Shown one piece after another: positions 998 to 50,944 of a stretch of 64,000 nucleotides of DNA; position 1 is the first letter of the stretch; every line of letters begins with the position of its first letter. A model generated the notes under the pieces. That model was not told the DNA's origin, did no database searches, and was given only the letters and a program-made list of their open reading frames with translations. The stretch spans positions 186,001-250,000 of the IMG/VR virus record IMGVR_UViG_3300035665_000001, one strand, 5' to 3'. Made by a program: the position numbers and the translations under genes.

Positions 998-1513
998 ATG
1001 GCTGACGAAAAACTTAGTGCAAAATTTGCAAAATATTGTGGAGAAGGCAAACTTACCATGGTTAAAAAATATATTGCTGATAAAAATGTCGATGTTAATT
1101 GGAATATGAGTTCACCATTAACAAAAGCAGTTAAATATGATAAAATTGAAGTTGTGAAACTTTTACTATCTGACCCTCGATTACAAACCGATTTTGAGAA
1201 TAAAAAAGAGTTGCGTGGATCGTTAATGTATAATAACCCACCATTAGTTTTAAATAATGTTATTATCAATCCATTTACTGAGGCAATGTTTACTAAAAAG
1301 TATGATATTCTCGATTTATTTTTATCAGATGGTAGATTTACAACTAATCGAACTGAATATTTGGATATTTTATTAAAAATTGATGATGATGAATTGAACA
1401 ATTACTTTAAAAAAATTCCAGGGTTTAAAGAATATGCTGTTTCCAAAGTTAAAGAAAACAATGATTATGTTAAGATAATTTCTAAATCTGTTGCATCCAT
1501 TATGATGTTTTAA
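998..1513 (+). CDS. Ankyrin-repeat protein with C-terminal hydrophobic-Phe tag
   Basis: CGEGKLTMVKKYI..DVNWNMSSPLTKAVKYDKIEVVKLLLSD resembles ankyrin repeats; ends KSVASIMMF. Confidence 0.65.
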   Translation: MADEKLSAKFAKYCGEGKLTMVKKYIADKNVDVNWNMSSPLTKAVKYDKIEVVKLLLSDPRLQTDFENKKELRGSLMYNNPPLVLNNVIINPFTEAMFTKKYDILDLFLSDGRFTTNRTEYLDILLKIDDDELNNYFKKIPGFKEYAVSKVKENNDYVKIISKSVASIMMF

Positions 1514-1605
1514 GAGTTTAACCACTAACTATTTGAATAATGAAATATCTAGTTTTTTGAAGTGGTGAGGATAAATAATTAAAACAAAAATATATAGGGG
1601 AAAAT

Positions 1606-2118
1606 ATGCGTATATTAGATTTAATTTTGGAATTCCAATTTGAAGAATTAGCTCAAGCATTATTTGAAAAAACAGGTGATGGTAAGAATGCAACAGTTGT
1701 CGCATGGGCTAAAAAATTAGATATGACTTATGAAGAATTACATAAAGTATGGGATAAATCTAAAAAAATAGCAAAAAGTGATACTGATTATGGTTTGATT
1801 ATGACTATTTTTAAAAGACAGGTTACCTCACTTAAAGGCGTAACTAAAAAACAACTTAAAGATGGTGGCGATGCTAAATTTAATTATAAAGTTAGAACAC
1901 AACAAACAATAGATCAGTTATTAGACGATAAACCTGCACCAAAATCCACAAATCGAGTTGAAGTTAAAAAAGCAGCAGTAAAACTTAAAAAAATTAGTCA
2001 AGAAATCAAAGATATTAAAAGTAGACCAAATAATACACCTACTAGAAAAGCTAGAAATAAAAAGGATTTGGCTGCAGCAATCGCTAAAAGAAAAGAAATT
2101 AAAGATTCATTAAATTGA
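1606..2118 (+). CDS. Basic Lys-rich hypothetical protein, possibly virion-internal
   Basis: 170-aa ORF with GGGG-containing RBS; N-terminus MRILDLILE; Lys/Arg-rich C-half; ATAAATA upstream at about 1570. Confidence 0.55.
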   Translation: MRILDLILEFQFEELAQALFEKTGDGKNATVVAWAKKLDMTYEELHKVWDKSKKIAKSDTDYGLIMTIFKRQVTSLKGVTKKQLKDGGDAKFNYKVRTQQTIDQLLDDKPAPKSTNRVEVKKAAVKLKKISQEIKDIKSRPNNTPTRKARNKKDLAAAIAKRKEIKDSLN

Positions 2119-2127
2119 TTTGCTTCC

Positions 2128-2170
2128 CTTTTAAGGGGAAATGAACTAAATGTTAAATTCCCCTTAAAAG
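2128..2170. terminator. Inverted repeat between convergent genes, likely bidirectional terminator
   Basis: CTTTTAAGGGGAA (2128-2140) / TTCCCCTTAAAAG (2158-2170), 13-bp perfect stem. Confidence 0.6.
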
Positions 2171-3570
2171 AATATTATTTTTTTTATTTTTTCAGGTAAA
2201 TATTCTACTTTTTTGTTAGTTAACAAATATTGTATGAATTCCTTATTTTTCAATAGTGATTGTTTTAACTGATCACCATCATTTAAATATTTCATTATTG
2301 ATGCTTCATCAATAGCATAATCCATCATATTACTAATAGTCGTGTTTTCAATAAAAATTCTTATCAAATTTGTTGCAATTTTACCCTCATGAATCTTATT
2401 TCCACTAAACAATTTAAGCAATTGTAATAATATGGTAGGTTGGTAATCTGGAAAATGTACCAACAGTATTTTTAATAAAATTGCCTGTGATTGTAAGTTA
2501 GTTTCAAAAATAGTTTTTTTAATGAGTGATAACAATTGTACATTTTCATCATCTACTAATCGCAACCAGTCTTGATCTATCAGTAGTTGTAGAAATTTAT
2601 GATCCTGTAAACAGGTAAGTGTTATAACCGATGATTTTAATCTCCAGCTATTAAAATAATATTTTTTTGCATCTTTATAATCGATGAATCTTGCGAATGC
2701 TGCATTATTTTCCGTATCTAGTAGATATTGCAATATTTCTTGACCTGTTTCGAATGAAAAATCCCAATTCTTCAAGATGTTTATATATATTTTTTGATAA
2801 CTAACCCCAATTTCAAATAATTTAAATGTTTGTGATACATTGTGGTTATTGTCGTCATCAAATAATGCTAGGTTATCAATTTTAAAGTCAGACAAGTGGT
2901 ATAATATATCGGAATATATTTTGTTTTGTGATTTATCTGACATAATATGAAAAAATGAATGAATTACATCTTCAATTTTTGTAGATTTATTTTCTGTTAA
3001 AATTTTTAATAAATCTATATTTTCTTGAGCGATACTAAAATCGATTACCCAGTTTATTGGGTTTTTAACGGTTGATGAAATTTCATCTATATTATTAATA
3101 ATTAGTTTTAATTCATGTGGTTTCAACTTTTCATTAAACTGTGAAATTGGGGATTGTTTATTATCATCAAAACCATAACCCACATTTTTTGGTATGATTG
3201 AATCGTAATCAGTAGATTCGGCTGATTTAAAATTGGTTTCTATTTCAAAATCATTTTTAATTTCTTTAGAACTTAAAATATTCTCTTTTATATCTAAAAT
3301 TATTGATGAAATCACGCCATTTTCTATGGTATATGAATTTCTAATTTTGATATTATTTTTCTTTAAAATAACAACTAATTTTTCAAACTTATTATTTAAG
3401 GAGTTTACTTCATCCTTACCTAATGTATGAGCATCATAGATTTTTGAGTTTATAATGAAACCATTTTTTTGAAAAGGTTGCCATACTTGCATAATAGTAT
3501 GTATATTATTTTCAACACTACATTTTAGTCCTAAAGAAAGGACCATGTGCTCTAATTCACTTTTTTTCAT
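2164..3570 (-). CDS. Helical-repeat (ankyrin-like) hypothetical protein with C-terminal tag
   Basis: 468-aa ORF; segments like FSIAQENIDLLKILTE; ends YLPEKIKKIIFF. Confidence 0.6.
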   Translation of the reverse strand: MKKSELEHMVLSLGLKCSVENNIHTIMQVWQPFQKNGFIINSKIYDAHTLGKDEVNSLNNKFEKLVVILKKNNIKIRNSYTIENGVISSIILDIKENILSSKEIKNDFEIETNFKSAESTDYDSIIPKNVGYGFDDNKQSPISQFNEKLKPHELKLIINNIDEISSTVKNPINWVIDFSIAQENIDLLKILTENKSTKIEDVIHSFFHIMSDKSQNKIYSDILYHLSDFKIDNLALFDDDNNHNVSQTFKLFEIGVSYQKIYINILKNWDFSFETGQEILQYLLDTENNAAFARFIDYKDAKKYYFNSWRLKSSVITLTCLQDHKFLQLLIDQDWLRLVDDENVQLLSLIKKTIFETNLQSQAILLKILLVHFPDYQPTILLQLLKLFSGNKIHEGKIATNLIRIFIENTTISNMMDYAIDEASIMKYLNDGDQLKQSLLKNKEFIQYLLTNKKVEYLPEKIKKIIFF

Positions 3571-3603
3571 ATTATATTTCTCTGTTGAATATCTTTTAAC
3601 CGC

Positions 3604-4335
3604 CTAAAAAAATAGATCTTTGATTTCTGTAGGTATATATTTTAGATCCTTCGTTTTCTTATATAAGTATTTACCTATAACATTCCTCGTTTTTACATCG
3701 GATAATGCTGCAAATCTAGTTTCTAAGGATTTAATATCTATATTTCTATCTTTATTTAGAATATTTGATATAATTAATTCAACATTTTTTACTTTTTTAC
3801 TTAACGTTAAACAATATCTTATTATTGCATTGTAAATTGTTGACTCTGAATTAAATCCATCAATTTCATCGATAAGCTTGTTTAAAATTTCTACTTCTTT
3901 ACCTTTTTCTCGACTAAAAATAAGATACATAAAATCATTTATTTCTGAAAATGTTCCAAACCCAGCCATTTCTTTAAATGAACCGTCTAACGTAGCCATG
4001 TGTCTTATTATCCATTCTCTATCAATACTTTCAGAATCGAAACTTTTTTTAGCTATTGTCGAACTAAATTTGGTATAACATGTTACTGTTGAATCAAAGT
4101 AAGGTGTATCTTTTAATAGATCCATCATTTCTTTATAATCATCATATGAATCGAATTTATATTTTGACATAAATGCTGATAATATTGCTGCATCATACTT
4201 ATCAAGCTCTTTATTCGCTGGAATAGTATAAAATTCCATCAGTCTTTTAAAAGTTTTCTTTGTAGCGGGTGCTTTTTTTTTAAAAATTGAGAGAATAAAT
4301 ATTCTCCATTTAAGCTGGTTATTATTTAAAGTCAT
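3604..4335 (-). CDS. Hypothetical protein with C-terminal tag
   Basis: 243-aa ORF ending YIPTEIKDLFF. Confidence 0.65.
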   Translation of the reverse strand: MTLNNNQLKWRIFILSIFKKKAPATKKTFKRLMEFYTIPANKELDKYDAAILSAFMSKYKFDSYDDYKEMMDLLKDTPYFDSTVTCYTKFSSTIAKKSFDSESIDREWIIRHMATLDGSFKEMAGFGTFSEINDFMYLIFSREKGKEVEILNKLIDEIDGFNSESTIYNAIIRYCLTLSKKVKNVELIISNILNKDRNIDIKSLETRFAALSDVKTRNVIGKYLYKKTKDLKYIPTEIKDLFF

Positions 4336-4359
4336 ATTTCATCCACATGTATAAAATTT

Positions 4360-4490
4360 GTGAAGCACTCCGACCTAAAGGACGGAGCTTCTAATGCTTG
4401 TTTCCAAGACTTACAAAGATCTTGATTTCAATGGAAATCACAGCCTTCTCTCCCAGAGACCAATTTGTTTTGGGAACCAAATAACTTCAT
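4360..4490 (-). ncRNA. Putative TnpB-type omegaRNA/reRNA scaffold
   Basis: About 130 nt with stems TGATTTC/GAAATCA, CAAGA/TCTTG and the terminal CTCCG..CTTTAG..CGGAG hairpin ending TTCAC; inferred from TnpB right-end architecture. Confidence 0.4.
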
Positions 4491-4645
4491 GATTCTCCGA
4501 TCAACGATCCATTTATATTTGGATCTGCTACAATCTTTACAGATTGCATTAAATTTATTTTGTGGAAATCCACATTTTTATTTATATCGGATTTTGTGAA
4601 AAACTGCCTATCCATCCTAAGCCTAAAGTCCGAGGTCTTACGGTA
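4360..4645 (-). mobile_element. Non-autonomous IS200/IS605-family element (PATE-like) with both end hairpins and no transposase or TnpB
   Basis: Minus strand starts TAAGACCTCGGACTTTAGGCTTAGGATGGATAGGCAG (left-end-like) and ends AGAAGCTCCGTCCTTTAGGTCGGAGTGCTTCAC (right-end-like); the left-end part is repeated at 35831-35880 (44/50 identical). Confidence 0.6.
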
Positions 4646-4662
4646 GGAATGAATAAAATATC

Positions 4663-5136
4663 TCATAAAAAAAATATATTTTCGATCTGTGAATTTTTTT
4701 TTATCATTTCCATCCATTTTAATTCCAAAGCTATTTTATTGAAATTTTTATTGTTAGATAGAATTTCAGTTTCAAATCTCTTTATTTCCGATAATAGAAA
4801 AAAATTTGCGATTTCTCTATCCCATCTTATGTAGGTAAACAAATTTGGAAACCTTTTTAATACCTTGGTATCATTAATGTTAATTAGATTGATGTTGATT
4901 AGTCCACCATTTCCTTTATACTGTTGCACTTCATTATCTGCGTCATTTTGAGTTTGAATTATCCATTCGAGAACTCTTTCAACATTATATTTATCATTCC
5001 AACCTAATAATTCTGCATCACCTTCACGCATTTCATCAATGATTTTTAATGCTTCATGTGCTGGATCATATTTGCTGTTGTATTTGGTTTCATAAAAATC
5101 TTTGACTTTTTTCCAATATTCATTCGTATCTAACAT
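4663..5136 (-). CDS. Hypothetical protein with C-terminal tag
   Basis: 157-aa ORF ending SQIENIFFL. Confidence 0.6.
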   Translation of the reverse strand: MLDTNEYWKKVKDFYETKYNSKYDPAHEALKIIDEMREGDAELLGWNDKYNVERVLEWIIQTQNDADNEVQQYKGNGGLININLININDTKVLKRFPNLFTYIRWDREIANFFLLSEIKRFETEILSNNKNFNKIALELKWMEMIKKNSQIENIFFL

Positions 5137-5169
5137 AACCTTTGATTCCTTATTACGTATTTACTATAA

Positions 5170-6612
5170 TCAAAAAGCGAGAACATTTGATAATTTTTTA
5201 AATTTTTCATATGTTGCCTTCCCAGATTTATCGACAGTTTCTACAAAATCCATTGTACTTTTAGGAATAGTTACCACATTATCATCTATTAAATTATTTA
5301 GGATTGAATTGATTGAGGTTTTTATTTTTGGTGGGTATAAATTTGCTTCAAAATGTAACCATAACCAATCATCCGTTGATAAGTTTACTATGCGGGATTT
5401 TATTTTTTGATAGTTAAAATTTAAAGCTTGCATAATATCTATTATATGATATTTTTGTACTTTTATTCCTTTCGGCCAATTAGATTTTACTTTGAAAAAA
5501 GCAACATCGTGGTTCTTTACCAAAAAGTCTAAAATCAAACTGTTTGATAGTAATTCATCTTCTACATTTCCTGGTAGTGTGTTTATGGCTATATAACTGA
5601 TATTCAACTTTTCGAGAATTTCTTTTGTCAACATATTTCCTCGAAATAACCTAAGTATAAACCTAGCTTTTGGTGATATATTTAGTATTTTTGGTGGTGT
5701 TTCTAATACATATTTAACAATTTTGTCTGTTAATTCTATATCTTTATCTAATGCGATTGCTATACCAGTTTTAGAAAAGGCAACATCGACTAATTGTGAT
5801 TTCCATCTAGGGTCAATAAACGACCAATCGTCTGAGTTTACATTAGGGGTAAGTTCGAAATATTTTTTAATTGCGTCTATAGTATAATAAGGCTGAGAAT
5901 TAATTAGGTTGAAATTTTCTGATAATCCACCACTACTTATTAACCACAACGCAAATATTTCTGGGTCAGCTTTAAATGTAGTAGATAGTTGACTCCAAAA
6001 TAATCGTAAAATATTGTATGTTTTTTTGTCAGTGTTTTTTAGATAGTCTATTATTTCTGATCGAGTTAATAAATTTTCTGGTAAGAAAATTATTGAATTT
6101 AAATCTAATTTTAATACTTGTTCTTTTAAAGATTTATCCCACCAATCAGTATGGAAATATTTTATTTGGTATATTTGATTAGTTATCAACCATTCTAATG
6201 TTTTAGTTGATGGTTTTTCTCCATGATAATTACTAAGGAAGTTAGATGAATTTTGTTGCAAATAAGAAATTAACCGTTTTTCAGTTTGTACTTCCCCAGG
6301 TAAAAATGGAAATAGTCCATTTTTAAAATCTGTTTTTGTATATAACCTATCATAAAATTCAAGGTTCAAAAATCCACCAATACCATTAATATCGGGAAAT
6401 TTAAACCATCCAATTATATTTGCTATTGGTGGAGTTTGATATACAAAATATAATTTTTCTATTAATTTTTGCCCATTTGGTGAATCTAAAATAAAATCGA
6501 GTATCTGATTAAATGTTGGTGGGGTAATAGAAATTATTTTTTCTATTTCCGATTTATCAATCGTGGATTGTTTAGATAAATTTATAAAAATTTCATTTTC
6601 AAACGGGTTCAT
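5170..6612 (-). CDS. Large helical hypothetical protein (weak DUF4116-like segments)
   Basis: 480-aa ORF with RBS; VLKLDLNSIIFLPENLLT-like repeats; ends KLSNVLAF. Confidence 0.55.
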   Translation of the reverse strand: MNPFENEIFINLSKQSTIDKSEIEKIISITPPTFNQILDFILDSPNGQKLIEKLYFVYQTPPIANIIGWFKFPDINGIGGFLNLEFYDRLYTKTDFKNGLFPFLPGEVQTEKRLISYLQQNSSNFLSNYHGEKPSTKTLEWLITNQIYQIKYFHTDWWDKSLKEQVLKLDLNSIIFLPENLLTRSEIIDYLKNTDKKTYNILRLFWSQLSTTFKADPEIFALWLISSGGLSENFNLINSQPYYTIDAIKKYFELTPNVNSDDWSFIDPRWKSQLVDVAFSKTGIAIALDKDIELTDKIVKYVLETPPKILNISPKARFILRLFRGNMLTKEILEKLNISYIAINTLPGNVEDELLSNSLILDFLVKNHDVAFFKVKSNWPKGIKVQKYHIIDIMQALNFNYQKIKSRIVNLSTDDWLWLHFEANLYPPKIKTSINSILNNLIDDNVVTIPKSTMDFVETVDKSGKATYEKFKKLSNVLAF

Positions 6613-6633
6613 TATGTGTTCCTTACAGAATAA

Positions 6634-7122
6634 TTAAAAAGTAAAACATGACAAAACTTTAATAGCACGTAAAACTTTGTCTATTTCAGTTGATAATTGA
6701 GTTACAATAGTATTCATCTTCATATCAATCTCACCATCTACATGATATAGTGTGATCATTGTTTTAAGTTTTAGTTTTTCATCTAATTCAGCAACCAATA
6801 CATCGGAAATACCTTTGAAAACTAAAGTTGCTGAAAAATCTCTACGAGATGGTGCTTTATATCCAGCACCTAATTCTGAAATTTTAATGGTTGCTACAAC
6901 TTTAATATTATTTACCGGTTGAGTTATAAATGTTATTTTTGTTTTTCCATCAAAGGATGAAACTTTATTCTCAGAATCATATATAATTTCGGTTAAATTT
7001 ATATTAAGTTTATTGAACATATCATCCATTTTTTTGGAAGCGATATCTGTTAACATTTCAACATCATCTTTAAAAGTGTTTCTATCTTGTGCTGATAACA
7101 GTAGTGTTTTTTTAACTGACAT
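6634..7122 (-). CDS. Hypothetical protein
   Basis: 162-aa ORF with GAGAGGAG RBS. Confidence 0.65.
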   Translation of the reverse strand: MSVKKTLLLSAQDRNTFKDDVEMLTDIASKKMDDMFNKLNINLTEIIYDSENKVSSFDGKTKITFITQPVNNIKVVATIKISELGAGYKAPSRRDFSATLVFKGISDVLVAELDEKLKLKTMITLYHVDGEIDMKMNTIVTQLSTEIDKVLRAIKVLSCFTF

Positions 7123-7142
7123 TTTTTTATTCTCCTCTCATA

Positions 7143-7769
7143 TTATAGAAATAGTAAATTTTTCATCTTGCTAGATAAAAACTTTTTATCTTTTGTTAGT
7201 TGCACAAATAATTTCAAAATTTTATCTGTGGTCATATTATTATCAAAAACTGCTGAAAATATATCATTGTTTTCTTTACAAGTTGCAAATTTTTGCCCAA
7301 AATCAGAAAAAATCTGTAAAATAATTTCCTCAGAATAATTTTTTTTAGGGTATTTAAAAAAGTTATACCAGAACGTTTCCCAGATTTTATCTGATACTAT
7401 GTTTGTATGATTCATTATAAACTTATATAATGTTAACCACTCAGTATCACTGGCAAAAAATTTTTCATTTTCAAGAGGTTGCATTAAATAAAAACTATAT
7501 GTGGTATTTGATGAGATGAATTTGATAAAATCAAAAATCCATTCCTTTTTAAATGCTTCGTTGTCGTAAAACAATTTATAAACTCTACTATTTTTGTTGA
7601 ATATTTTTACTTTTTTGGGGTTTGTCAACACATTAAAGAATTCATCATTTATATTTTTACTCGACACTATAGCTTCAATAATATCATCGACATCATCACT
7701 GACTAATAATTTACAAAGGTCTTTGGATGATAGGTTATGTATAGTTTCATTATTATTTGAATTTGGCAT
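7143..7769 (-). CDS. Hypothetical protein with C-terminal tag
   Basis: 208-aa ORF ending FLSSKMKNLLFL. Confidence 0.65.
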   Translation of the reverse strand: MPNSNNNETIHNLSSKDLCKLLVSDDVDDIIEAIVSSKNINDEFFNVLTNPKKVKIFNKNSRVYKLFYDNEAFKKEWIFDFIKFISSNTTYSFYLMQPLENEKFFASDTEWLTLYKFIMNHTNIVSDKIWETFWYNFFKYPKKNYSEEIILQIFSDFGQKFATCKENNDIFSAVFDNNMTTDKILKLFVQLTKDKKFLSSKMKNLLFL

Positions 7770-7780
7770 AATAGTTTACC

Positions 7781-8593
7781 TTACAAAAACAATATATTTG
7801 CAATTTTTTCAGGGATGTACTTATTCGATCTTGTACTAGCGAATGCAGCTTTTTTAACTGCCATTGTTGCATTTTTATGATTGACAGCCTTATCTCTGAA
7901 TCCCTCTAAAAAACTAAAATTTCTAACATCTAATGGTGCTGAAGCAATATCGATAAGAATTGATTCATCTAAATCATCAAATTTTAATAATGTACCAACG
8001 ATAGAATACCAGATATTATCTTTGTATGACCAATCAGCATATTTTTTTAATTTATCATACCAGTCATTTATCAATTTTTTAGTAACATTTTTTGCTGCTA
8101 CTAATTTTTCAAATGCTAGGTAATTGTAATTTTTTGTATTGGGTGGTAATACCCACATATTAAAAAATAAATTTAAATGATTTTCTGTTATGGATGGGTT
8201 TTGAAGAACCTGAGCATAAGATGATGAACTTCGCATTAACGCATTGATTATACTGTCATCGATTACTGGGTTTTCAGCTAATAGTCTTCTAATTTTACCT
8301 CGCAATCCCAAGTTTTTGGATTTTGTTGCTTGTGAGATGCTACTTTGTTTTTCTTCGGTACTAATGTCCTTTAATGTTTTCATCATTAAACGTATAGTAT
8401 CGGGTGTTAAATTTGGATTTAATGCCGCTCCAATCCAGGCGTTATAATTTATTTTATCTGTAATAGTGATTAATTTTTCAACTTCTTTCAATGGTGCTTT
8501 AGAAAATTTTTCACCATCTTTTGTTAATTTAATGTCACTATCAATTGCACCTTGTAATCTAATTTGTCTATCTAAGTATTGACTCATACTCAT
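7781..8593 (-). CDS. LRV/HEAT-like helical repeat protein with C-terminal tag
   Basis: Repeats AALNPNLTPDTI, LAENPVIDDSII, VLQNPSITENHL, AVNHKNATMAV; ends YIPEKIANILFL. Confidence 0.6.
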   Translation of the reverse strand: MSMSQYLDRQIRLQGAIDSDIKLTKDGEKFSKAPLKEVEKLITITDKINYNAWIGAALNPNLTPDTIRLMMKTLKDISTEEKQSSISQATKSKNLGLRGKIRRLLAENPVIDDSIINALMRSSSSYAQVLQNPSITENHLNLFFNMWVLPPNTKNYNYLAFEKLVAAKNVTKKLINDWYDKLKKYADWSYKDNIWYSIVGTLLKFDDLDESILIDIASAPLDVRNFSFLEGFRDKAVNHKNATMAVKKAAFASTRSNKYIPEKIANILFL

Positions 8594-8615: not shown

Positions 8616-9944
8616 CTATATATTTATTTGGTAGGTGGTATTATTATCTAAATCAATTAACGCATTTCTAAGTGGTGGGGTTATTATCTCTTTTAATGCG
8701 TTTAATAGATAATCAACATCATCTTTTGTATGGGTATAATGAATGGAGATTCTCAACCAACCCATATCTGGTCTACTGTTTGGATCGTTTGGTAATCCAA
8801 GAAGTATATGTCCGTATGGACCAGCACAACTGCATCCTGCACGAGTTTCTAGTTGATATTGAGTTGATAGTTTTTCACATAGTTCTTCGGGAGTAAAACC
8901 TTTAACATTTAATGAACATATACCAATATTGGGAACATCCATATTTCCATAAACAGTAACATTAGGAAACGTACTCACTTCAGAAACGAAATACCGATGT
9001 AATTCTTTTTTGATATTCTTAATTTTATCTAATCCGAAATCATTTCGTAATTTATACGCTTTGGCAGTTTTTATAAATTGTAATATGCCCGGAGTTCCTG
9101 CATTTTCTCTAATATGTAAATCATCGTCATAATAGTGTTCTTCTGAATTAACATAACAAACTGTTCCACCACCTGCAAAAGTGGGTGGTAATGTAGTATC
9201 AACTAACGATTTTCTAATTACTAATAAACCTACACTACCTGGTCCACCAATACATTTATGTGGTGACATAAACATTACATCATAAAATGAGGAGGGTATA
9301 TTGATGTAAGGTGAACTTGTAGCAGCATCTAGACATAGCACAGCGTTATACTTCCTTGCTATGACACTTACCGCCTGTACATCGGTTATAATTCCAGTTA
9401 CGTTAGATGCTACGGATAAGCAAATATAAATTTCTCGATTTTTATTTTCTTGTAGTTTTTTTTCCAAATCTAATAAACATAATGTACCTGTATCATTTAA
9501 ATTTAATCGTATTATATCGGCAATGGATTCTCGATATGATACATCATTTGAGTGATGTTCATATGGACCGACTAATACTACAGGTTTATCAATTACTTTT
9601 ATTTCACATCGACGTTTTGTTCGTGGTGGTAAATAAATTCCAATCAATTCCTGAAATTTTTTTATTGCCGCTGTAGATCCATAACCTGCAGGTATTATTT
9701 CAAAATCGAAAGGATTTATTTCAAGTAATTTAAATAACGCATTTCTTGAAGTGGTCCAATGTTCGTTCATATAATTTGAAAGGGTTGCATCTTTAGAATG
9801 TGTATTTGCGTAATGTGCTGAAATTTGTTTCATTTCGGCTTCAATACTTTCAACACAAAGACCACTGGCAGTATAATCGAAATATTTATTTGCATTGGGA
9901 TTTATAAATTTGATTTTCACAGTTGCGATTTCCTTAGGTTGCAA
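8616..9944 (-). CDS. Aminotransferase class V / cysteine desulfurase-like PLP enzyme
   Basis: YFDYTASG, YANTHS, GSTAAI, EHHSN, DAA, SPHK (PLP Lys), GTPG, RAGCSCAGPYG (catalytic Cys loop). Confidence 0.9.
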   Translation of the reverse strand: MQPKEIATVKIKFINPNANKYFDYTASGLCVESIEAEMKQISAHYANTHSKDATLSNYMNEHWTTSRNALFKLLEINPFDFEIIPAGYGSTAAIKKFQELIGIYLPPRTKRRCEIKVIDKPVVLVGPYEHHSNDVSYRESIADIIRLNLNDTGTLCLLDLEKKLQENKNREIYICLSVASNVTGIITDVQAVSVIARKYNAVLCLDAATSSPYINIPSSFYDVMFMSPHKCIGGPGSVGLLVIRKSLVDTTLPPTFAGGGTVCYVNSEEHYYDDDLHIRENAGTPGILQFIKTAKAYKLRNDFGLDKIKNIKKELHRYFVSEVSTFPNVTVYGNMDVPNIGICSLNVKGFTPEELCEKLSTQYQLETRAGCSCAGPYGHILLGLPNDPNSRPDMGWLRISIHYTHTKDDVDYLLNALKEIITPPLRNALIDLDNNTTYQINI

Positions 9945-11238: not shown

Positions 11239-11679
11239 ATGTCCACATATACATTTGATATGTTAAGTATGTTAAATTATGTGGAAACCTATTCTAAAAA
11301 ACAATACATTCATAAAATGGTTTCCAAAATACGTGAAATAGGTGATGATGAATTTTGGGTATTAAATAAACAATATATGGAAATATATAAATTTCGGGCA
11401 GTTCGAGTATCAGAATTTGACGTACAAATGAATTTGGATAATGAGTTAGCAAAAGAACATATTTTTAGTGGAATATTCGTTTTACATATGAAGGAATTTT
11501 TGTTAAGATTTTTGGAAGAGGTTCCAGGAACTGTATATGTTAATAAGTTAGAATGTTACAGAGAACTCTATGATGTTTTATATGCAAAAGCTCATAAAAC
11601 AAAATCTTTAAAACAGAAAAAAATGTTGGTTGAAAAAATTGAGTTTATTGAAAATGAATTCCCACAATTTGTAATTTGA
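11239..11679 (+). CDS. Hypothetical protein
   Basis: ORF 11221-11679 of the track; start adjusted to the first ATG after the upstream stop. Confidence 0.55.
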   Translation: MSTYTFDMLSMLNYVETYSKKQYIHKMVSKIREIGDDEFWVLNKQYMEIYKFRAVRVSEFDVQMNLDNELAKEHIFSGIFVLHMKEFLLRFLEEVPGTVYVNKLECYRELYDVLYAKAHKTKSLKQKKMLVEKIEFIENEFPQFVI

Positions 11680-12479: not shown

Positions 12480-12728
12480 ATGATGGATATAAAAATGGAT
12501 AATAATCAATATGCACCATTATCAGACAGTGAAATGATAATCTTAAAACGACAACATACACAGAATTTTGATGACATGACTATTAAAGCCACAATACAGC
12601 TATTACATATGTTGAATTTTTCTGATGAAACCATGAAAACACATGTAAATAGCGAAGCATATAACTTACTACTCCGCAGATTACATATGATAATTGATTG
12701 GACTAATTACCCTGAAAGATTAATTTAA
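12480..12728 (+). CDS. Hypothetical protein
   Basis: 82-aa ORF. Confidence 0.45.
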   Translation: MMDIKMDNNQYAPLSDSEMIILKRQHTQNFDDMTIKATIQLLHMLNFSDETMKTHVNSEAYNLLLRRLHMIIDWTNYPERLI

Positions 12729-13073: not shown

Positions 13074-14204
13074 ATGAAAACTAAAAATTATCATTATGTT
13101 TACAAAATTACAAATCATAATCCAGTAGATTCACGTAAGTTCTATATTGGTGTTAGAACAACGAAAGGGCGATTACCAGAAGATGATATTAATTATATGG
13201 GTTCATCAGATACATTAACCGCTGCAATTAAAACCCAAGGAAAAAAATATTTTTCTAAAGAAATTTTGTCAGTATGGCAATCAAAGGATGATGCATATGC
13301 TGAAGAAATAAGATTACATGAATTGTATGATGTTTGTAGAAACATGGAATATTATAATAATGCTAACCAAACGAGCACTAAATTTTGTACGGATGGTAGG
13401 GTTGTAGTGTTTGATAAGAACACGGGCAAAACAAAAAGTGTAACAAAAGAAGAATTTCAAACTGTTACTGATTATGTTGGTGTTAAAACAGGTATGGTTT
13501 CCGTAATGGATACTACCGATGGAGTATTTAAATCAGTGTCAAAGGAGGAATTTGAAAAATCCGAACATTATATTCATCCTGCAACTGGTAAAGTAACCGT
13601 GATTGATACCACCGATGGTTTAGTTAAACATGTGAACTGTACAGAATATAGAAGTTGTGAAAATTATGTTTCTATCGCTACTGGAACTGTAACGTGTTAT
13701 GATATTAGAGATGGAAAAAACAAACAAGTTTCTAAAGATGAATTTGATAATGCTGATAATTTAATCAGTTGTAATGCTGGAAAAGTTACTGTGCTTGATA
13801 CTCGTGATGGAATTAAGAAATCGGTAACTAAGGTAGAGTTTGATATTACCTCTCATTATGTCGGTGTTAAATCTGGTAGAGTTACCGCTTTCGATATTCG
13901 GGACAAAAAGTTTAAAACTGTTACGATTGAAGAATTTGCAAATGATGATAATTATGTGAAAGGTAATTCCAAAAAAGTTGTTATTTTTGATAATAATGAT
14001 AATGTGGTTTTTGTATCTTATGGCAATTTTGAAACTTTTTGTAAAAAACATAAATTGCCGTGCTTTGTATTTAGAATGTCATATCGTAATAATGGCAGTC
14101 CAATCTATCAAAATTTAAGAGGCGTAACAAAAGCAAAGATATTTAAAAATGGAAACTACAAATATATCGGTTGGTATGCTAAAATTAGTGATGATACAAC
14201 TTAA
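13074..14204 (+). CDS. GIY-YIG (Seg-like) homing endonuclease with six 32-aa repeats
   Basis: YHYVYKITN..KFYIGVR..YMGSS..KEIL..EIRLH..YYN; then six units of G(K/R)V(T/S)xxDxxDGxxKxVxxxEF. Confidence 0.85.
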   Translation: MKTKNYHYVYKITNHNPVDSRKFYIGVRTTKGRLPEDDINYMGSSDTLTAAIKTQGKKYFSKEILSVWQSKDDAYAEEIRLHELYDVCRNMEYYNNANQTSTKFCTDGRVVVFDKNTGKTKSVTKEEFQTVTDYVGVKTGMVSVMDTTDGVFKSVSKEEFEKSEHYIHPATGKVTVIDTTDGLVKHVNCTEYRSCENYVSIATGTVTCYDIRDGKNKQVSKDEFDNADNLISCNAGKVTVLDTRDGIKKSVTKVEFDITSHYVGVKSGRVTAFDIRDKKFKTVTIEEFANDDNYVKGNSKKVVIFDNNDNVVFVSYGNFETFCKKHKLPCFVFRMSYRNNGSPIYQNLRGVTKAKIFKNGNYKYIGWYAKISDDTT

Positions 14205-15511: not shown

Positions 15512-15615
15512 GAATTTTTTCTCAAATTAATGTAATTAAACTATATTTATGAATTTTTTGTTGAAACAATTACAAAAATAAATAAATATAATAAAATTAT
15601 AATTTGGAGAAAAAA

Positions 15616-36674: not shown

Positions 36675-37867
36675 ATACACAGTGAATAACTTTTACAAAT
36701 TAAAAGGACCAAATCAAATGAAAATTTTCAAACAAACAACGAGTATTATTAGTATTATTTTTGCATTAGCTGTATGTTTATTTTCCGTATCAGCGTTTAT
36801 ACATGCGTTATTTGTAATTCCAGCTTTTAGAATGTACTTAGGCCAGATGATTGTTGTCTGTGGAGCCACTTATCTATTTTTCAAGGGTATATTTGAGCTA
36901 TTGTCAATGTATATTGATTATGATCAACACCGAAAATAATGGTAGACCATCGATTACATAATATGTGAATTAACTAACTTTTCAACTAAGGGGTGTGTTA
37001 ATGAACAACATTGATGAGGATATTTTTGATGAATACTATCTAAGTCGGAGTAGATGTACACAATAATCCACTAATTAAAATGTTTGAGGATGAAAAAAAT
37101 GTTTGAACCTGCAAAAGAAATGTTACATAAAGCAAATGAAAATTTTAAAGCACTTTTTGAAGAGAAGATTACTGAAGTTGGTCCATGTATTCAAGAAGCA
37201 CTATTTGATGTGGCTGCTAAGGGAGAGTATAAAACTACCATCATATTTACTGGTCGTTCACATCGCAATCCAATTGGTTGGATACCAAACAACTATGTCC
37301 ACTATAATGAAGAAGATACAATGCTCAGTGCATTAACTGAGTTCTTTTGTGAACAATTGACTAATGATGGTTATGGTGTAGTTACCCAAATGGTTAAAAA
37401 TGATATAATTGTGATAACGATTTTTTTTAATCCTATGAAGACAAATAAAATGGGTACAAATTTACATGCAGTAGGTAATGGTTACTAAGACGGATGAGTA
37501 AACGGAACAACAAATTATCTTTGAATTGTATCAAACGTCAACTAATGTTACCTGGGATATATTAACCTCAATTCAGAACAAACATATTTTGAGTGGGTGA
37601 TTACGTTTAGGATAAAGATTATGCCCCCAGTTTACGGAGATGATGATTATTTCTGGTAGTATCCACCAATATGGTATAATATAATTTTTGAAGGTGATAT
37701 GCGCATTTAATAGAGTTAGATAATTTTAGTACTAAATGATGAGAATATTGGATATATGGTTGAATTATATTTAACAAATTCCATCAGAGTTAGAGCTATT
37801 TAATATGGTGTGTCACATGGTGAGTGGGATTAGAGATAGATTATCAATTATACTGAGTAATATAAAA

Positions 37868-38644
37868 ATGAATATTAATGAAGAAATTGCTGAAGTAAAA
37901 TCAATTATTGCAGTTCAAGAAAAACGATTAGCTGAATTAGAAAAGCAATCAAATGAATTAACATTTGAAATAGCTCCGGAGTTATTAGAAAAAGGCAATG
38001 TGGATTGGTATGAGGCGATTAACTATTGTAAATTGTTAGGTAATGGTTGGCGACTTCCATCTCGGGATGAACTGAAAATAATTTATAACTCTGATAATGA
38101 CTTGAACGAAAACAGTACGTATTGGTCAGCTACAAGGGGTAATAATGATCGTCTTGCTTTTAATCAAAGTATGTATAATGGGGATCAATTTATTTCGGAT
38201 AAAAGTTTTAGTTCCAATGAATATCGAGTTAGACCGATAAGGGATATTATTAGACCAAATTTATCGTTTGAAGTAGTTAATAAATCGACTGAGATTCAAG
38301 TGGAATGGGATAGTGTGGATAAGCATTGTAAACCGTTAGGTTTATCAACTACCGATGAATTACCGTTTGAAATTTCTCCTAAATCATGTGAAAAACAATG
38401 CAATTGGTATGAAGCATTTGAATATGCTGAATTTGTGGATCAAGGTTGGAGAATACCCACAATAGATGATTTAAAGCTTATTTTTCAAAACCGTAAAGGT
38501 ACAAATATGGAGCTTGGTGTTTATTGGACAAAAAATGTATATGGGCATACCGCTTTAGGTATTAATATGCTGAATGGATTACAACAACCGTATGGTAAAG
38601 AAATGGGTAACAACTACATTAGGCTAATTCGGAATAAAAAATGA
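37868..38644 (+). CDS. Coiled-coil leader plus two Lcl/DUF1566-like domains and a truncated middle unit
   Basis: First domain is closely paralogous to 35910-36250; FEVVNKSTEIQVEWDSV is a truncated unit; last domain is divergent. Confidence 0.8.
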   Translation: MNINEEIAEVKSIIAVQEKRLAELEKQSNELTFEIAPELLEKGNVDWYEAINYCKLLGNGWRLPSRDELKIIYNSDNDLNENSTYWSATRGNNDRLAFNQSMYNGDQFISDKSFSSNEYRVRPIRDIIRPNLSFEVVNKSTEIQVEWDSVDKHCKPLGLSTTDELPFEISPKSCEKQCNWYEAFEYAEFVDQGWRIPTIDDLKLIFQNRKGTNMELGVYWTKNVYGHTALGINMLNGLQQPYGKEMGNNYIRLIRNKK

Positions 38645-45970: not shown

Positions 45971-45991
45971 TACCACTAAGTTACTTACAAA

Positions 45992-46501
45992 TCAAAAAAT
46001 ACTACTATTATTTAATTTATCGTGATTCTTTTTAAATTCGGTAATCAAGTCTGTAACTAACTGATGGTCTTTAATGTATTGTTTAATATCATCAACAGTA
46101 GCAGTTACCAATCGTTTATTTCTAAATTTAGGCCAGTTAGATGTAATATCTCGTTTGTTACCTAAACGACCGTTTGCATCGTAATAAAATTTTCTAACTT
46201 TTACAATTGTATGGAATGGATGTTCCATCGTGGGATCAAAATCCTCAGTTCCATCAAAATACCATTTAACTTGGGACTTTTTAAAATTGCCCACAAGAAA
46301 AATTATTTCTGATTTTTCACCAATCGATTCTAGATAAGTATGCAATGCTAATGCAAATTCATAGCATTTTCCCGATTCAAATGCAGATGGTCCTCTCATT
46401 CCACGCTCAATAAAAAACATACTATTCCGGTTTAAATCCGAAATAATTTGTTCAATATTATACTGTTTCATTGAGGCTTCTAAAAGTGTTGATAATCTCA
46501 T
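45992..46501 (-). CDS. Hypothetical protein with a possible papain/transglutaminase-like Cys-His-Asp triad
   Basis: GKCYEFALAL .. FHTIVKV .. YYDANG; N-terminus MRLSTLLEA. Confidence 0.45.
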   Translation of the reverse strand: MRLSTLLEASMKQYNIEQIISDLNRNSMFFIERGMRGPSAFESGKCYEFALALHTYLESIGEKSEIIFLVGNFKKSQVKWYFDGTEDFDPTMEHPFHTIVKVRKFYYDANGRLGNKRDITSNWPKFRNKRLVTATVDDIKQYIKDHQLVTDLITEFKKNHDKLNNSSIF

Positions 46502-48056: not shown

Positions 48057-48062
48057 ATCTGT

Positions 48063-48968
48063 ATGTTTGATGTAAAAAATCTAAACCTAATAATAGATGA
48101 TGTTGATATTCTACACAATATAAACTTTGATATTCATAATGGTGAAATACTTTCTATTATTGGACCGAGTGGTTGTGGTAAATCATCTATTTTAAAATCT
48201 ATAGCTGGAATTTATAAACATACTACAGGGGCATTAATATTAGATGGTGAAAATATCGCGGACAAACCTATTAATCTCAGAAATGTCAACTTAGTTTTTC
48301 AAGATTTCCCTTTGTTTCCACATATGACTACTATACAAAATATGCTTGTTGCCTGTGATAATAACCGAGTTATTGATATAGTCCTCGATGAAATGGGTAT
48401 CAAACATTTAAAATTTAAATATCCTCATGAAATGAGTGGTGGTGAACAACAACGAGTTGCATTAGCTCGTGCGATAGTGTATAAACCCAAATTATTATTA
48501 TTGGACGAACCATTTTCAAATATTGATGTGCTAACCACAAAAGTATTGAGACATAAAGTATTTAATTTATTGAAGCAATTTAATATTACTACTCTAATGG
48601 TTACACATGATTTGGATGATGTTTTTGAAATGAGTGAAAGATGTATCGTTATGAAAAATTCGAGTATTGTACAGTTTGATACTTTTGATAATTTATACAA
48701 TTATCCAGTTGACGAATATGTTTCAACTTTATTCGGTAATGTTGTTTCTTATGCAGGTAAAAATTATAGACCAGAAAATATATTAATTATTGCAGATTAT
48801 TCACCTAATTCCGTTAAAACTGTAATTAAAAATGTAAAATTTAAATCACATTATAATGAAATAACTTTAGAATTGGATAATAAACAAGATATCATTGTTT
48901 TTGATTATTATCGTAAAAAGTATAAAATTAATGAGATTATGTATTTGAATTTTAATAACCCATTATAG
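48063..48968 (+). CDS. fbpC: Fe3+ ABC transporter ATPase (FbpC/FutC-like)
   Basis: GPSGCGKS Walker A, VFQDFPLFPH Q-loop, MSGGEQQR signature, LLLDEPF Walker B, VTHD. Confidence 0.9.
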   Translation: MFDVKNLNLIIDDVDILHNINFDIHNGEILSIIGPSGCGKSSILKSIAGIYKHTTGALILDGENIADKPINLRNVNLVFQDFPLFPHMTTIQNMLVACDNNRVIDIVLDEMGIKHLKFKYPHEMSGGEQQRVALARAIVYKPKLLLLDEPFSNIDVLTTKVLRHKVFNLLKQFNITTLMVTHDLDDVFEMSERCIVMKNSSIVQFDTFDNLYNYPVDEYVSTLFGNVVSYAGKNYRPENILIIADYSPNSVKTVIKNVKFKSHYNEITLELDNKQDIIVFDYYRKKYKINEIMYLNFNNPL

Positions 48969-48980
48969 GAAAAACATATT

Positions 48981-49976
48981 ATGAAGAAAAATTTATGGTT
49001 GCTACTTTTTTTGTTTGGTATTTATAATGCATCTGCTTCAGATAAAAAGAGTATTCATGTTATTACTGATAGAAGTGATGCACACTTATTAGATTTAACA
49101 TCAAAATTTGAAAAAGAAAGTGGTGTTGAAGTGAATTTAACATTCGTTAAAAATGGCATTATTGAAAAAGTAAAAAGTTATGATTATGATGCAATTATCA
49201 GTAAGGATAGTAGTGAATTAGTTGCGGCGAAAGATGAGGGGTTGTTACATACTATTGATGATAGTGTGCTAGACAACATTCCAACCAATTTTAAGGATAT
49301 TGATAAACAATGGTTTAATATGAGCTATAGAATTAGATCATTTCATATGAAGAAAGGTTTAACAGATGCACCAACATCGTATGAGGATTTAGCAAAACCC
49401 CAGTATAAAAATAGAATTTGTATTAGAAGTTTAACTCACAATTACAATTTAGAAATGTATGGAACTATGTTATCATATATGGGTGAGGAGAAATTTACTA
49501 ACTGGTTTAAAGGATTTAAATCGAATATAGTTAAAGATTCGGCAGCAGGAAATGATAGAACCCAGGTTAAAGGTGTGTATGATGGTGAATGTGACATAGC
49601 AGTTGCAAATTCATATTATCGTGGATTGATGTTACAAGATCCGGAGCAAAAAAAATGGGCAGAAGCAACATATTTATACATACCTAACCAAGAAAACGGT
49701 AGAGGAGCGATAGCATTGTATTCTGCAGTAGGTTCGTTATCGGATAATACCAATAATAAAACATTTTTGAATTATTTAATTTCAAAAGAAACGCAACAAC
49801 AGTTATCATATGATAATTATGAATATCCAATTAAAACTGAAAATACATCACCTACTGTTAAACAATATGGTGATGCACAGAAATTGGACTATAAATCAAT
49901 CAAATTATTTGATAATGTTCAAAACGATTTATTTGAATTGAGAAAAAAAGCTTATTTAATTATTAAAGCCAACTAA
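48981..49976 (+). CDS. fbpA: Fe3+ ABC transporter periplasmic binding protein (FbpA/FutA-like)
   Basis: Signal peptide; SYEDLAKPQYKNRICIRS..HNYN, GNDRTQ, CDIAVANSYY, YEYP. Confidence 0.85.
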   Translation: MKKNLWLLLFLFGIYNASASDKKSIHVITDRSDAHLLDLTSKFEKESGVEVNLTFVKNGIIEKVKSYDYDAIISKDSSELVAAKDEGLLHTIDDSVLDNIPTNFKDIDKQWFNMSYRIRSFHMKKGLTDAPTSYEDLAKPQYKNRICIRSLTHNYNLEMYGTMLSYMGEEKFTNWFKGFKSNIVKDSAAGNDRTQVKGVYDGECDIAVANSYYRGLMLQDPEQKKWAEATYLYIPNQENGRGAIALYSAVGSLSDNTNNKTFLNYLISKETQQQLSYDNYEYPIKTENTSPTVKQYGDAQKLDYKSIKLFDNVQNDLFELRKKAYLIIKAN

Positions 49977-50944
49977 AACAAAACCAATTTTGCAATTGGG
50001 GTGAGTTTAATAAATTCACCCCAATGTTTCCAATCTCTTTCAGCTGATATAGTTTTTACAAACACTTTTGATCTTGAATTGAGGTCGGCAATCAAATCCT
50101 CATCAAATAATATTTTATCATCTTTTAATAATGAAATAGCTAATTGTTTCCATTCATCGTCAGAAAATTTAAAAAAATCTAAATATTTTGGATTCTCAAC
50201 GTATAAATCTGACATATTTTTAATAACTACTTGACCAATAGCTGTTGATGATATTCTCACAAATGGCAATATCTTTTCTAATGATCTGGATGATAAATTT
50301 CGTAAAAATGGATAGGTATAAACTGATAGTCCTGTCAATACTTTACCATCTCTTATAATACCCATTTTTATATAAAAATCAATAGTTTCATCTTCTCTAT
50401 CAAGTGAACGACAATTCAATAATATTGATGCCACCCAATTATTGTCAATGATGGGATAGTTTTTAACACCGTAAGTTTTAACCAACCATTCCATTGCAGG
50501 TAAATTGTGAAATTTATAAAACAATTGAAAGTATTTTATATCACTGAAATTTGTTAATTTATTTTCCTTGTATAACTTATCAAGTATTGGTACAACATTG
50601 GGATCATCATACTTTATACTTGATAAATCGGCATCAAAGAAAAATTTACGCAATTCTGGTGTAAATTTATCAATGGTTAATTTTTTTAACATTGCCGCAG
50701 TTATTGAATATCTACCCTTTGGTGTTTTTTTGATTTCTATACCATTTGCTTTTAAGGCTGATACAATAATTTCGACTTTTTTATTGAATTCATCGATTTT
50801 TAGATTTGATGTGTAATTGTTTCCTCGTCCAAAATAATCCAATATTTCTTCACGCAATCCACATTGTGAATTTCTAAAGGTTTCTAACCATTCGATTATG
50901 TTTAATCTTCCAGAAAGGGGTAAACTTAATAATTTTGATGCCAT
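49973..50944 (-). CDS. Hypothetical helical protein with C-terminal tag
   Basis: 323-aa ORF ending KLTPIAKLVLF; GATAAATA upstream. Confidence 0.6.
   Translation of the reverse strand: MASKLLSLPLSGRLNIIEWLETFRNSQCGLREEILDYFGRGNNYTSNLKIDEFNKKVEIIVSALKANGIEIKKTPKGRYSITAAMLKKLTIDKFTPELRKFFFDADLSSIKYDDPNVVPILDKLYKENKLTNFSDIKYFQLFYKFHNLPAMEWLVKTYGVKNYPIIDNNWVASILLNCRSLDREDETIDFYIKMGIIRDGKVLTGLSVYTYPFLRNLSSRSLEKILPFVRISSTAIGQVVIKNMSDLYVENPKYLDFFKFSDDEWKQLAISLLKDDKILFDEDLIADLNSRSKVFVKTISAERDWKHWGEFIKLTPIAKLVLF
49995..50025. terminator. Hairpin at the convergence of the fbp operon and the 49973 gene
   Basis: ATTGGGGTGA / TCACCCCAAT stem; lies inside the 3' end of the minus-strand CDS; weak U tract. 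Confidence 0.35.

Follow-up and report, generated by a model that had tools for sequence, protein, structure and literature searches.

The window analysed here, the whole stretch of 64,000 nucleotides at positions 186,001 to 250,000 of IMG/VR record IMGVR_UViG_3300035665_000001, lies in a 306-kb record of an uncultivated T4-like jumbo phage (hereafter G000) with gp23, gp21 and terminase. Near its left end, a group of genes encodes otherwise different proteins that share a short C-terminal peptide. On the plus strand, the gene at 998-1513 encodes a 171-aa ankyrin-like protein (Pfam Ank_2, below the cut-off) with the weak tail SKSVASIMMF at 1475-1510, and the T4-late-promoter-like motif ATAAATA is located at 959-965, 32 nt upstream. 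It is followed by an untagged 170-aa gene (1606-2118, plus strand), the N-terminus of which, MRILDLILE, resembles a T4-type N-terminal capsid-targeting sequence (CTS). The subsequent genes are on the minus strand, including a 468-aa protein with an orphan body (2164-3570; tail YLPEKIKKIIFF at 2167-2202), a 243-aa protein (3604-4335; tail YIPTEIKDLFF), a 157-aa protein (4663-5136; weak tail NSQIENIFFL) preceded by TAAATA at 5158-5163 (minus strand), 21 nt upstream, and a 480-aa helical orphan (5170-6612; weak tail KKLSNVLAF), for which the structural matches in the Atlas are weak, DUF4116-like and below TM 0.5. The 162-aa product of 6634-7122 (minus strand), ending VLSCFTF, is a doubtful member inside the cluster, with neither ortholog nor HMM support. 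Next to it are a 208-aa protein (7143-7769, minus strand; tail FLSSKMKNLLFL) and a 270-aa LRV/HEAT-like alpha-solenoid (7781-8593, minus strand; tail YIPEKIANILFL), the latter encoded by the first gene of the window operon. The AF2 model of the 270-aa protein is all-alpha with a pLDDT of 81, falling to 63 in the last 10 residues, and Atlas structures match it to LRV/HEAT proteins (given for 7784-8593). The late-promoter-like motif AATAAATA is found at 8621-8628 (minus strand), 27 nt upstream of this gene, overlapping the end of a class-V aminotransferase gene (8616-9833, minus strand; PF00266). The synteny of the aminotransferase gene with the tagged cluster is kept in two other lineages, L092 and L094. 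In addition, the nearest cellular homologs of the aminotransferase are from Arcobacteraceae, suggesting that the phage probably infects Arcobacter-type bacteria.

Two further tagged genes are located apart from the cluster. The gene at 15616-16422 (plus strand) encodes a 268-aa protein of subfamily A, with paralogs at genome positions 12293 and 157270; its tail, KLPASIKSLIF, lies at about 16387-16419, and two overlapping AATAAATA motifs are found at 15577-15588 (plus strand), 27-31 nt upstream. A word-indexed search of 5.8 billion proteins with this protein returned only itself. The gene at 49973-50944 (minus strand) encodes a 323-aa protein with the weak tail KLTPIAKLVLF; ATAAATA is present at 51007-51013 (minus strand), 62 nt upstream, and a TAAATA also lies 26 nt upstream. 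PHROGs gave nothing for the nine tagged window proteins searched.

A sequence-only reading of the window had listed nine such termini on proteins with different bodies and no signal peptides, clustered at 1-8.6 kb, several with TAAATA upstream. This observation is confirmed, and it is larger than was proposed. All nine termini are present at the respective ORFs, although for the two plus-strand genes the coordinate given was the gene start; the doubtful gene at 6634-7122 had not been listed. The clustering was confirmed at 2.1-8.6 kb, the absence of signal peptides and transmembrane segments was confirmed by a simple hydropathy scan, and the upstream motif was confirmed and sharpened to (A/T)ATAAATA at transcription-unit starts.

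Genome-wide, 14 strong and about five weak members were found. The pattern [LI]P..[ILVM]..[ILVMF][ILVMF][FL] occurs 11 times in the proteome of 352 ORFs and 92,468 residues, each time within five residues of a C-terminus, whereas about 2% of positions would qualify if it were placed at random. Meanwhile, a tail HMM run against all six-frame ORFs recovered only C-terminal ends of real genes, with nothing comparable in other frames. The four weak tails (998, 4663, 5170 and 49973) belong to genuine members, since their one-to-one orthologs in the relative G001 carry canonical tails: B264389 ends IPKELRDIFIF, B257319 ends VPEISDLFIF, B255183 ends DVQDIFIF and B282558 ends LLPEVREIFIF. The genes at 2164, 3604 and 7143 have the G001 orthologs B271115, B267134 and B249172, respectively.

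The relative G001, with an 83-85% identical capsid protein, carries about 40 tagged genes in one 47-kb array, their products ending Y..T.D..[YF]LP.E[VI]KDIF[IV]F, and tagged genes were found in further lineages. An exhaustive profile search of 1.84 billion proteins returned 32 hits at E<=1e-3, of which 31 end at the last residue and one a residue before it; the 3604-4335 protein was recovered among them. DNA pattern scans of IMG/VR for the exact tails found only G005, a near-identical copy of the phage, with the G000-type pattern and G001 itself with the G001-type pattern, adding nothing on wider distribution. The tail profile gave only chance-level matches against PDB sequences, and literature searches found no prior description of the tag.

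To find out whether the tail is merely residual homology of full-length paralogs, as the sequence-only reading had named among the outcomes that would count against it, 60 tagged proteins were compared with their tails removed. They fell into 44 unrelated groups (ankyrin, LRV/HEAT-like and orphans), although two small paralog subfamilies exist and many bodies are alpha-solenoids that could share very old ancestry; the paralogy objection thus partly holds. Among 71 members searched against Pfam at E<=0.01, only ankyrin families were found, in 10 proteins, and no enzymes; most other bodies have no match. The tagged orthologs are 22-38% identical, against 59-85% for head proteins.

The tails differ between genomes in a concerted way, despite 10 one-to-one ortholog pairs. 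For example, position +2 after the proline is K in 8 of 13 G000 tails and in none of 33 G001 tails (Fisher 5e-6), and the tails of unrelated proteins within a genome are more alike than those of orthologs between genomes. Codon identity at identical residues is 0.67 against 0.63 expected, so that selection acts on the protein and there is no gene conversion. A DNA-level function, such as an RBS or recombination site, is likewise rejected, because codon identity is at the codon-usage expectation, all three stop codons are used and isolated genes also carry the tag. (T/A)ATAAATA precedes every tagged transcription unit in G000 and the operon starts in the G001 array, and the same motif precedes the MCP gene. 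However, the late timing rests on this promoter motif alone, which is common in this AT-rich genome, with 34% of unit leaders carrying ATAAATA.

Taken together, these data are best explained by a modular C-terminal docking peptide with the core [YF]LPxx[IV]K[ND][IL]F(x)F, inside a module of about 25-34 residues (..N.P.E....hY..T.D..yLP.E.KDIFhF). In this view, a clade of T4-like jumbo phages attaches the peptide to a large, rapidly diversifying set of late-expressed, non-enzymatic repeat or helical binder proteins (ankyrin, LRV/HEAT-like, LRR-like and orphans), and all copies in one genome are kept compatible with one common, lineage-specific partner. The most likely partner would be a component of the assembling prohead, either the scaffolding core or the inner shell, and the proteins would be loaded into the head and delivered with the DNA into the next host cell. 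The motif, its strict terminal position and modularity, the protein-level selection, the concerted change between genomes, the late-promoter motifs and the fast evolution of the bodies are established by the present analysis; docking on a common partner is inferred from them, whereas the prohead as partner and the injection of cargo remain conjecture from sequence alone. The interpretation in the sequence-only reading, a sorting signal for loading cargo into the capsid or tail or for docking on a common partner or protease, is partly supported. Capsid loading is favoured by the late-promoter motifs, by the presence of gp23 and gp21 (both by Pfam) and of a gp22-like scaffold (assigned by position and coiled-coil character), and by several precedents: the T4 CTS is shared by diverse anti-defence internal proteins (PMC3012670), C-terminal propeptides of T4 gp21 and Alt are suggested to be targeting signals (PMC9026906), and SPN3US heads contain about 50 different proteins (PMC7411985). 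However, no partner was identified, and a complex prediction with MCP, scaffold and tail gave no answer, which counts neither for nor against. A comparison for compensating charge changes allowed no conclusion: the MCP has only five G000-specific substitutions, none changing charge, and the scaffold is more acidic in the G001-type phages, the wrong direction for simple charge complementarity. In addition, the same phage has about 14 proteins with a T4-like N-terminal CTS-type motif ending in [LI]-x-E, which could already serve head targeting and leave the C-terminal tail for another address, and no consistent gp21-type L/I-x-E site lies at the tail junction. We regard this reading as tentative, with a probability of about 0.4.

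Among the alternatives, the tail might dock on a common hub other than the capsid, with the variable bodies bringing different host targets to one phage or host machine such as an AAA+ unfoldase or protease; this would be the bacterial counterpart of poxvirus ANK/F-box adaptors or of the ClpX-binding tail of SspB. The architecture of a variable binder with a short conserved C-terminal peptide, the genome-specific dialects implying a shared partner and the fast evolution of the bodies, as expected of host-interaction proteins, are compatible with this idea; the genome encodes an AAA+ ATPase at 3413-5032, and, by eye only, the LPxE[IV]..I[FL] core looks like the start of an F-box. However, the late-promoter motifs argue against early host takeover, no F-box or PRANC match was found in Pfam, the inferred bacterial host has no Skp1, and no protease partner was identified, so this possibility seems unlikely. 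Equally unlikely is that the tail has no docking function and is the conserved C-terminal capping helix of one very old, explosively diverged family of alpha-solenoid paralogs. The tandem arrays, the paralog subfamilies, the many alpha-solenoid bodies and the predicted helicity of the tail are consistent with such residual homology, and by eye the first half of the module (H.N.P.E....hY) resembles an LRV-type repeat unit. Nevertheless, the idea that the module is 1.5 LRV repeats remains a by-eye lead, since no internal repeat matches the module significantly; different repeat classes (ankyrin, LRV and an LRR-like protein) and orphans carry the same tail; the tail has lower pLDDT than the body; and a private structural cap would not be expected to vary between genomes in concert.

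Two further possibilities appear very unlikely. The tail could bind a sliding clamp, given that T4 gp43 ends SLDFLFG, that the tail ends D/N-hydrophobic-F-(x)-F and that the same phages carry a clearer clamp-type tail, [ST]T[DN][FIL]LF, on RNase HII and others. However, that clearer motif is a distinct class on different proteins, while the carriers of the tail described here are about 40 non-enzymatic repeat proteins with no replication or transcription domains. Searches for a clamp or clamp loader (PF02916, PF09116, phrog_223, phrog_168 and phmmer with T4 proteins) gave no credible hit: no gp45 or gp44 homolog was detected in G000, and no gp45 homolog in G001-G005, although the longest records are only 85-87% complete. 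Alternatively, the tail might be an amphipathic membrane-targeting helix or might mediate assembly of the family members with each other, since its core is predicted to be helical with one hydrophobic face and the G000 tails are Lys-rich. Membrane targeting is nonetheless judged unlikely, because G001-type tails carry net negative charge (E, D and the carboxylate), which is atypical for bacterial membrane-targeting helices, and no other membrane features were found; self-assembly remains hypothetical.

If the tag is a capsid or hub address, it gives a simple rule for listing the delivered or hub-bound proteins of a jumbo phage from sequence alone. It would also point to a very large, diversifying arsenal of binder proteins, likely host-interaction or anti-defence factors, in phages of Arcobacter-type bacteria, and it would offer a short natural peptide that may be suitable as a cargo-loading tag. 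The dialects would also provide a clean natural case of many ligands co-evolving with one receptor. A more far-reaching possibility, which we consider doubtful, is that 20-45 different, rapidly evolving ankyrin, LRV or orphan binder proteins are loaded into the capsid through this C-terminal address, as by an encapsulin or scaffold tail but in a tailed phage, and are injected with the DNA as a broad anti-defence arsenal; together with the two other terminal tags seen in the same genomes, this would amount to a small postcode system of short linear motifs.

Among known systems, the poxvirus ANK/PRANC (F-box-like) proteins are large families of ankyrin proteins with a conserved C-terminal LPxEI-type motif that docks on a common partner. 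However, an F-box or PRANC is a three-helix domain of about 40-60 residues, whereas only 9-10 residues follow the LP here; no such Pfam match was found in 71 members at E<=0.01 or in 10 window proteins at E<=1, and the host is inferred to be bacterial. The clamp-binding tails of T4 gp43, gp33 and gp55 are hydrophobic and aromatic at the extreme C-terminus and dock several proteins on one ring, but their consensus, [ST]LDFL[FY], and their carriers differ from those described here, and the separate TTDFLF class in these phages fits the T4 motif better. Encapsulin cargo-loading peptides, the scaffold C-termini of P22, 80alpha and herpesviruses, and the HK97 protease C-tail are short C-terminal peptides or helices that address a protein to the inside of an HK97-fold shell; the present tag is likewise a short C-terminal peptide on unrelated proteins, with a different consensus, and its binding to the MCP or scaffold of this phage could not be predicted. 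The CTS of the T4 internal proteins IPI/II/III and Alt is also a short peptide shared by otherwise unrelated, fast-evolving proteins encoded in variable loci of a T4-type phage with gp21, gp22 and gp23; the T4 genes are late, and their products are packaged and injected as anti-defence factors (PMC3012670, PMC9026906). In contrast to the CTS, which is N-terminal, about 10 residues long and removed at an L/I-x-E site, the tag described here is at the C-terminus in all members and consists of a 10-11-residue core inside the longer module, with LPE in 6 of 13 G000 and 9 of 33 G001 tails and with D, or E one position later, in many others. Its packaging is a conjecture by analogy with the CTS, and its family, at about 40 genes, is much larger.

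The single 306,333-bp IMG/VR virus record, called G000 here, of which the window takes up bases 186,001-250,000, has a G+C content of 30%, is about 85% complete by CheckV, and represents a distant T4-type phage. The Pfam Gp23 major capsid protein (MCP) profile matches at an E-value of 3e-81, with a second, gp24-like copy, and the gp21 prohead protease (Peptidase_S77) matches at 5e-35. A gp22-like coiled-coil scaffold lies between the protease and MCP genes, a T4-like large terminase is located at window 14201-15511, and homologs of gp46 and gp47 are present. The nearest cultured capsid proteins are only 31-33% identical and belong to jumbo myoviruses such as PA5oct, XaC1, RsoM2USA and the E. 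coli phages of about 350 kb. A cysteine-desulfurase-like class-V aminotransferase gene, an auxiliary gene next to the tagged cluster at window 8616-9833, has its nearest cellular homologs (52-55% identity) in Arcobacter, Malaciobacter, Poseidonibacter and Aliarcobacter, which, together with the low G+C content, suggests by inference that Arcobacteraceae are the likely host. A Rep3-type plasmid replication initiator (Pfam Rep3_N and Rep3_C) lies directly upstream of the tagged genes of the window (window 1-962; G000 185754-186962). In addition, core genes look broken up by mobile elements (window 14201-15511, 18648-19625 and 60953-62692; G000 63460-66627, 73078, 118714, 257123, 279267 and 298298). 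The terminase ORF begins with a segment that by eye looks intein-like, DNA polymerase B matches are spread over several ORFs, and the portal-like ORF is 1055 aa long against about 495 aa in relatives. Two ORFs match HNH homing endonuclease families (phrog_3339/559), whereas two more, at 73078 and 118714, only share the same C-terminal WDCG motif, by eye.

The sequence-only reading had described a shared C-terminal ending on nine otherwise unrelated proteins; this observation holds, all nine termini being as written, and the family is larger than was described. In a crude call of 352 ORFs for the whole genome, seven further genes, at genome positions 12293, 135714, 136541, 137343, 139817, 140737 and 157270, end in the same way, and a tail HMM run against all six-frame ORFs adds those at 138142 and 138932. 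The strict pattern [LI]P..[ILVM]..[ILVMF][ILVMF][FL] occurs 11 times in 92,468 residues, and every occurrence is within 5 residues of a C-terminus. No comparable HMM hit was found inside proteins or in non-coding frames. The genes form two clusters, both on the minus strand, at genome 135.7-141.6 kb (seven genes) and 188.1-194.6 kb (window 2164-8593), while single genes lie elsewhere.

The tail is conserved in relatives, where it is carried by even more proteins. A search with the MCP found related IMG/VR contigs, among them G005, a near-identical 140-kb fragment of the same phage, and G001, a record of 289,880 bp with an MCP 83-85% identical. The tail profile hits 23 places in G001 at E<=1, and the ORF listing shows about 40 consecutive plus-strand genes of 105-513 aa between 236.7 and 283.6 kb, which end in ...Y..T.D..[YF]LP.E[VI]KDIF[IV]F. 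An exhaustive HMMER search with a 34-column profile of 49 tails against 1.84 billion representative proteins returned 32 proteins at E<=0.001; of these matches, 31 end at the last residue and one ends one residue before it. About 20 of the proteins come from other metagenomes, and they include an LRR-like body (P0026) and several LRV-like ones. Two further lineages (contigs L092 and L094), which were reached through the aminotransferase, keep the synteny of aminotransferase followed by tagged cluster. Their tails have their own variants and are sometimes followed by 1-8 extra residues, for example ...DIFWFNFVNLKPI, and a free carboxylate directly after the last Phe is therefore usual but not obligatory. 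These related phage contigs also carry, near the tagged cluster, an IS605 OrfB/TnpB (Cas12f-like) gene and ABC-transporter components (permease, ATPase and binding protein) (L092 18315-19589; L094 2894-7577).

To examine whether the bodies are related, we removed the last 25-26 residues and compared the rest; the bodies are mostly unrelated. Within G000, blastp and iterated phmmer/hmmsearch find only two small subfamilies, one formed by the genes at 12293, 157270 and 201616, and the other by the ankyrin set at 135714, 136541 and 137343, which the gene at 138142 joins in a later comparison. Across 60 tagged proteins of G000 and G001 there are 44 unconnected groups, ten of which are one-to-one ortholog pairs between the two genomes. 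These pairs show that the four weak tails listed in the sequence-only reading (window 998, 4663, 5170 and 49973) are true members, since their orthologs end in IPKELRDIFIF, VPEISDLFIF, DVQDIFIF and LLPEVREIFIF, respectively. A Pfam search of 71 tagged proteins finds ankyrin repeats in 10 and nothing else credible, and no enzymes. The protein encoded at window 7781-8593 is an LRV/HEAT-type solenoid according to Atlas structure matches and an all-alpha AF2 model with pLDDT 81, and an ankyrin paralog models at pLDDT 88.7. In both models the terminal helix has lower confidence than the body (63 and 68-84, against 85-97 for the residues just before it). One of 60 proteins has a hydrophobic 19-mer, and none has a signal-peptide-like start.

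Selection acts on the peptide rather than on the DNA. At positions where two G001 tails share an amino acid, they share the codon in 66.6% of cases, while codon usage alone predicts 62.5%, and all three stop codons are used; this excludes recent gene conversion or a DNA-level role. The two genomes nevertheless use different dialects, LPEKIKNLFF in G000 and LPxEVKDIFIF in G001. Position +2 after the Pro is K in 8/13 G000 tails and in 0/33 G001 tails (Fisher 5e-6), and it is acidic in 1/13 against 23/33 (2e-4). Position +6 is L in G000 and I in G001 (2e-5), and the G001 tails are one residue longer in 27/33 cases. The genomes are linked by the ten ortholog pairs, whose bodies are 22-38% identical, and many independent tails have therefore shifted in the same direction. 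A set of ligands tracking one receptor would do this, whereas private structural caps would not. The head proteins of the same two genomes are 59-85% identical, so that the tagged proteins evolve much faster.

The sequence TATAAATA is the T4 late-promoter consensus, and in G000 it lies within 60 nt upstream of the MCP gene and many structural genes. Seven of the eight tagged transcription units in G000, namely those at 12293, 140737 (exact TATAAATA), 157270, 186998, 193781, 201616 and 235973, have (T/A)ATAAATA or ATAAATA within 70 nt upstream, while the eighth, at 190663, has only TAAATA. The background among unit leaders is 34%, and seven of eight gives a p of about 0.003. In the G001 array the genes are 8-14 nt apart, and at the larger gaps a TATAAATA or AATAAATA often appears, as at 239882, 246542, 251481, 254719, 258066, 267134 and 282558. 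The tagged genes therefore look like late operons, although this is inferred from the motif only.

The same genomes carry other terminal motifs. A second C-terminal tag, ...[YFH]P[EQ].[LWFY][IVL]-COOH, sits on at least 16 small proteins of 79-169 aa (window 12480-12728 and 11239-11679; G000 17898, 131777, 154340 and 163978; G001 228665-239813), which show no detectable body similarity by phmmer with the last 12 residues removed; eleven of them lie just upstream of the G001 array. A third, ...[ST]T[DN][FIL]LF (variants ..SDGLF, ..TSELF and ..SNSLF), is found on RNase HII (G000 149405-150019), on four phrog_10773 paralogs (G000 285997, 287360, 302763 and 304485), at G000 300400, and at G001 231048 and 235296. 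It resembles the clamp-binding end of T4 gp43, ...SLDFLFG, yet no gp45 or gp44 homolog was detected in G000, and no gp45 homolog in the related records. Another set of plus-strand genes in the window (30914-31852, 31868-32548, 35880-36557 and 37805-38644) shares a C-terminal ...N[YF][VI]R[AL][IV][RK].. ending (for example NFYVRAVKDIN, YVRAIRDI, NYVRAIRPIL and NYIRLIRNKK), and these are probably a paralog family.

Taken together, these results point to a docking peptide for one common partner. A strictly terminal peptide conserved at the protein level, about 40 unrelated, non-enzymatic bodies of binder type, concerted and lineage-specific change of the tails, the late-promoter motifs and the fast evolution of the bodies are established from the sequences, whereas binding to a common partner and late expression are inferred from them, and prohead targeting remains a hypothesis. 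The suggestion of the sequence-only reading that the ending is a sorting or docking signal is thus partly supported. We rank prohead targeting first, but only tentatively, with a probability of about 0.3-0.4. A complex prediction of MCP, scaffold and tail gave no answer, which is evidence neither way. One complication is that about 14 G000 proteins (including those at window 1606-2118 and 45992-46501 and at G000 13125, 20177, 132893, 133640, 162344, 256040, 261870, 283487, 285261 and 296191) and several G001 proteins interspersed in the array (248604, 249000, 258066, 274313 and 278018) start with M[KR][LIV]x[DEQ]L[LIV]..E, which resembles a T4-type N-terminal capsid-targeting sequence ending in a gp21-like [LI]-x-E site; some are interspersed in the tag arrays and several have TATAAATA upstream. 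If that motif is the head address, the C-terminal tail may address something else. A weak lead, by eye only, goes the other way: the prohead protease (G000 69734-370) ends in ...KEIKSFLNSIINKTK (EIRNFL or EIQKFL in relatives), which resembles the tail core E-I-K-[DS]-[IL]-F, and the loose pattern occurs only 9 times in the proteome; on this lead, the tag may mimic a protease targeting segment.

Other readings of the tail account for part of the evidence. A hub other than the capsid, for which the tagged proteins would act as adaptors to an unfoldase or protease in the style of ANK/F-box proteins, fits the architecture, but it does not fit the late timing inferred from the promoter motif, and no F-box profile match was found. 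Pure residual homology among solenoid paralogs would explain the arrays and the helical bodies; however, it does not fit the mixed repeat classes, the concerted dialects, or the lack of internal matches to the module. Clamp binding is suggested by the hydrophobic aromatic end and by the T4 gp43 terminus, but the [ST]T[DN][FIL]LF class on RNase HII and other proteins is separate and fits better, and no clamp gene was found in G000 and the related records, the longest of which are 85-87% complete. Membrane targeting is unlikely because the G001 tails are net acidic.

We found no description of this motif or family in Pfam, PHROGs, PDB sequences or the searched literature. Targeting or docking tags on diverse phage proteins are already known, and if the function is as proposed the present tail would be a further variant of such tags; the size of the family and the co-existence of several terminal tags in one phage are unusual. 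The closest documented system is in T4 itself, where the first 10 residues of IPIII suffice to load foreign proteins. T4 gp21 and Alt also lose C-terminal propeptides that may be targeting signals (PMC9026906), and the heads of giant phages can hold about 50 different proteins (PMC7411985).
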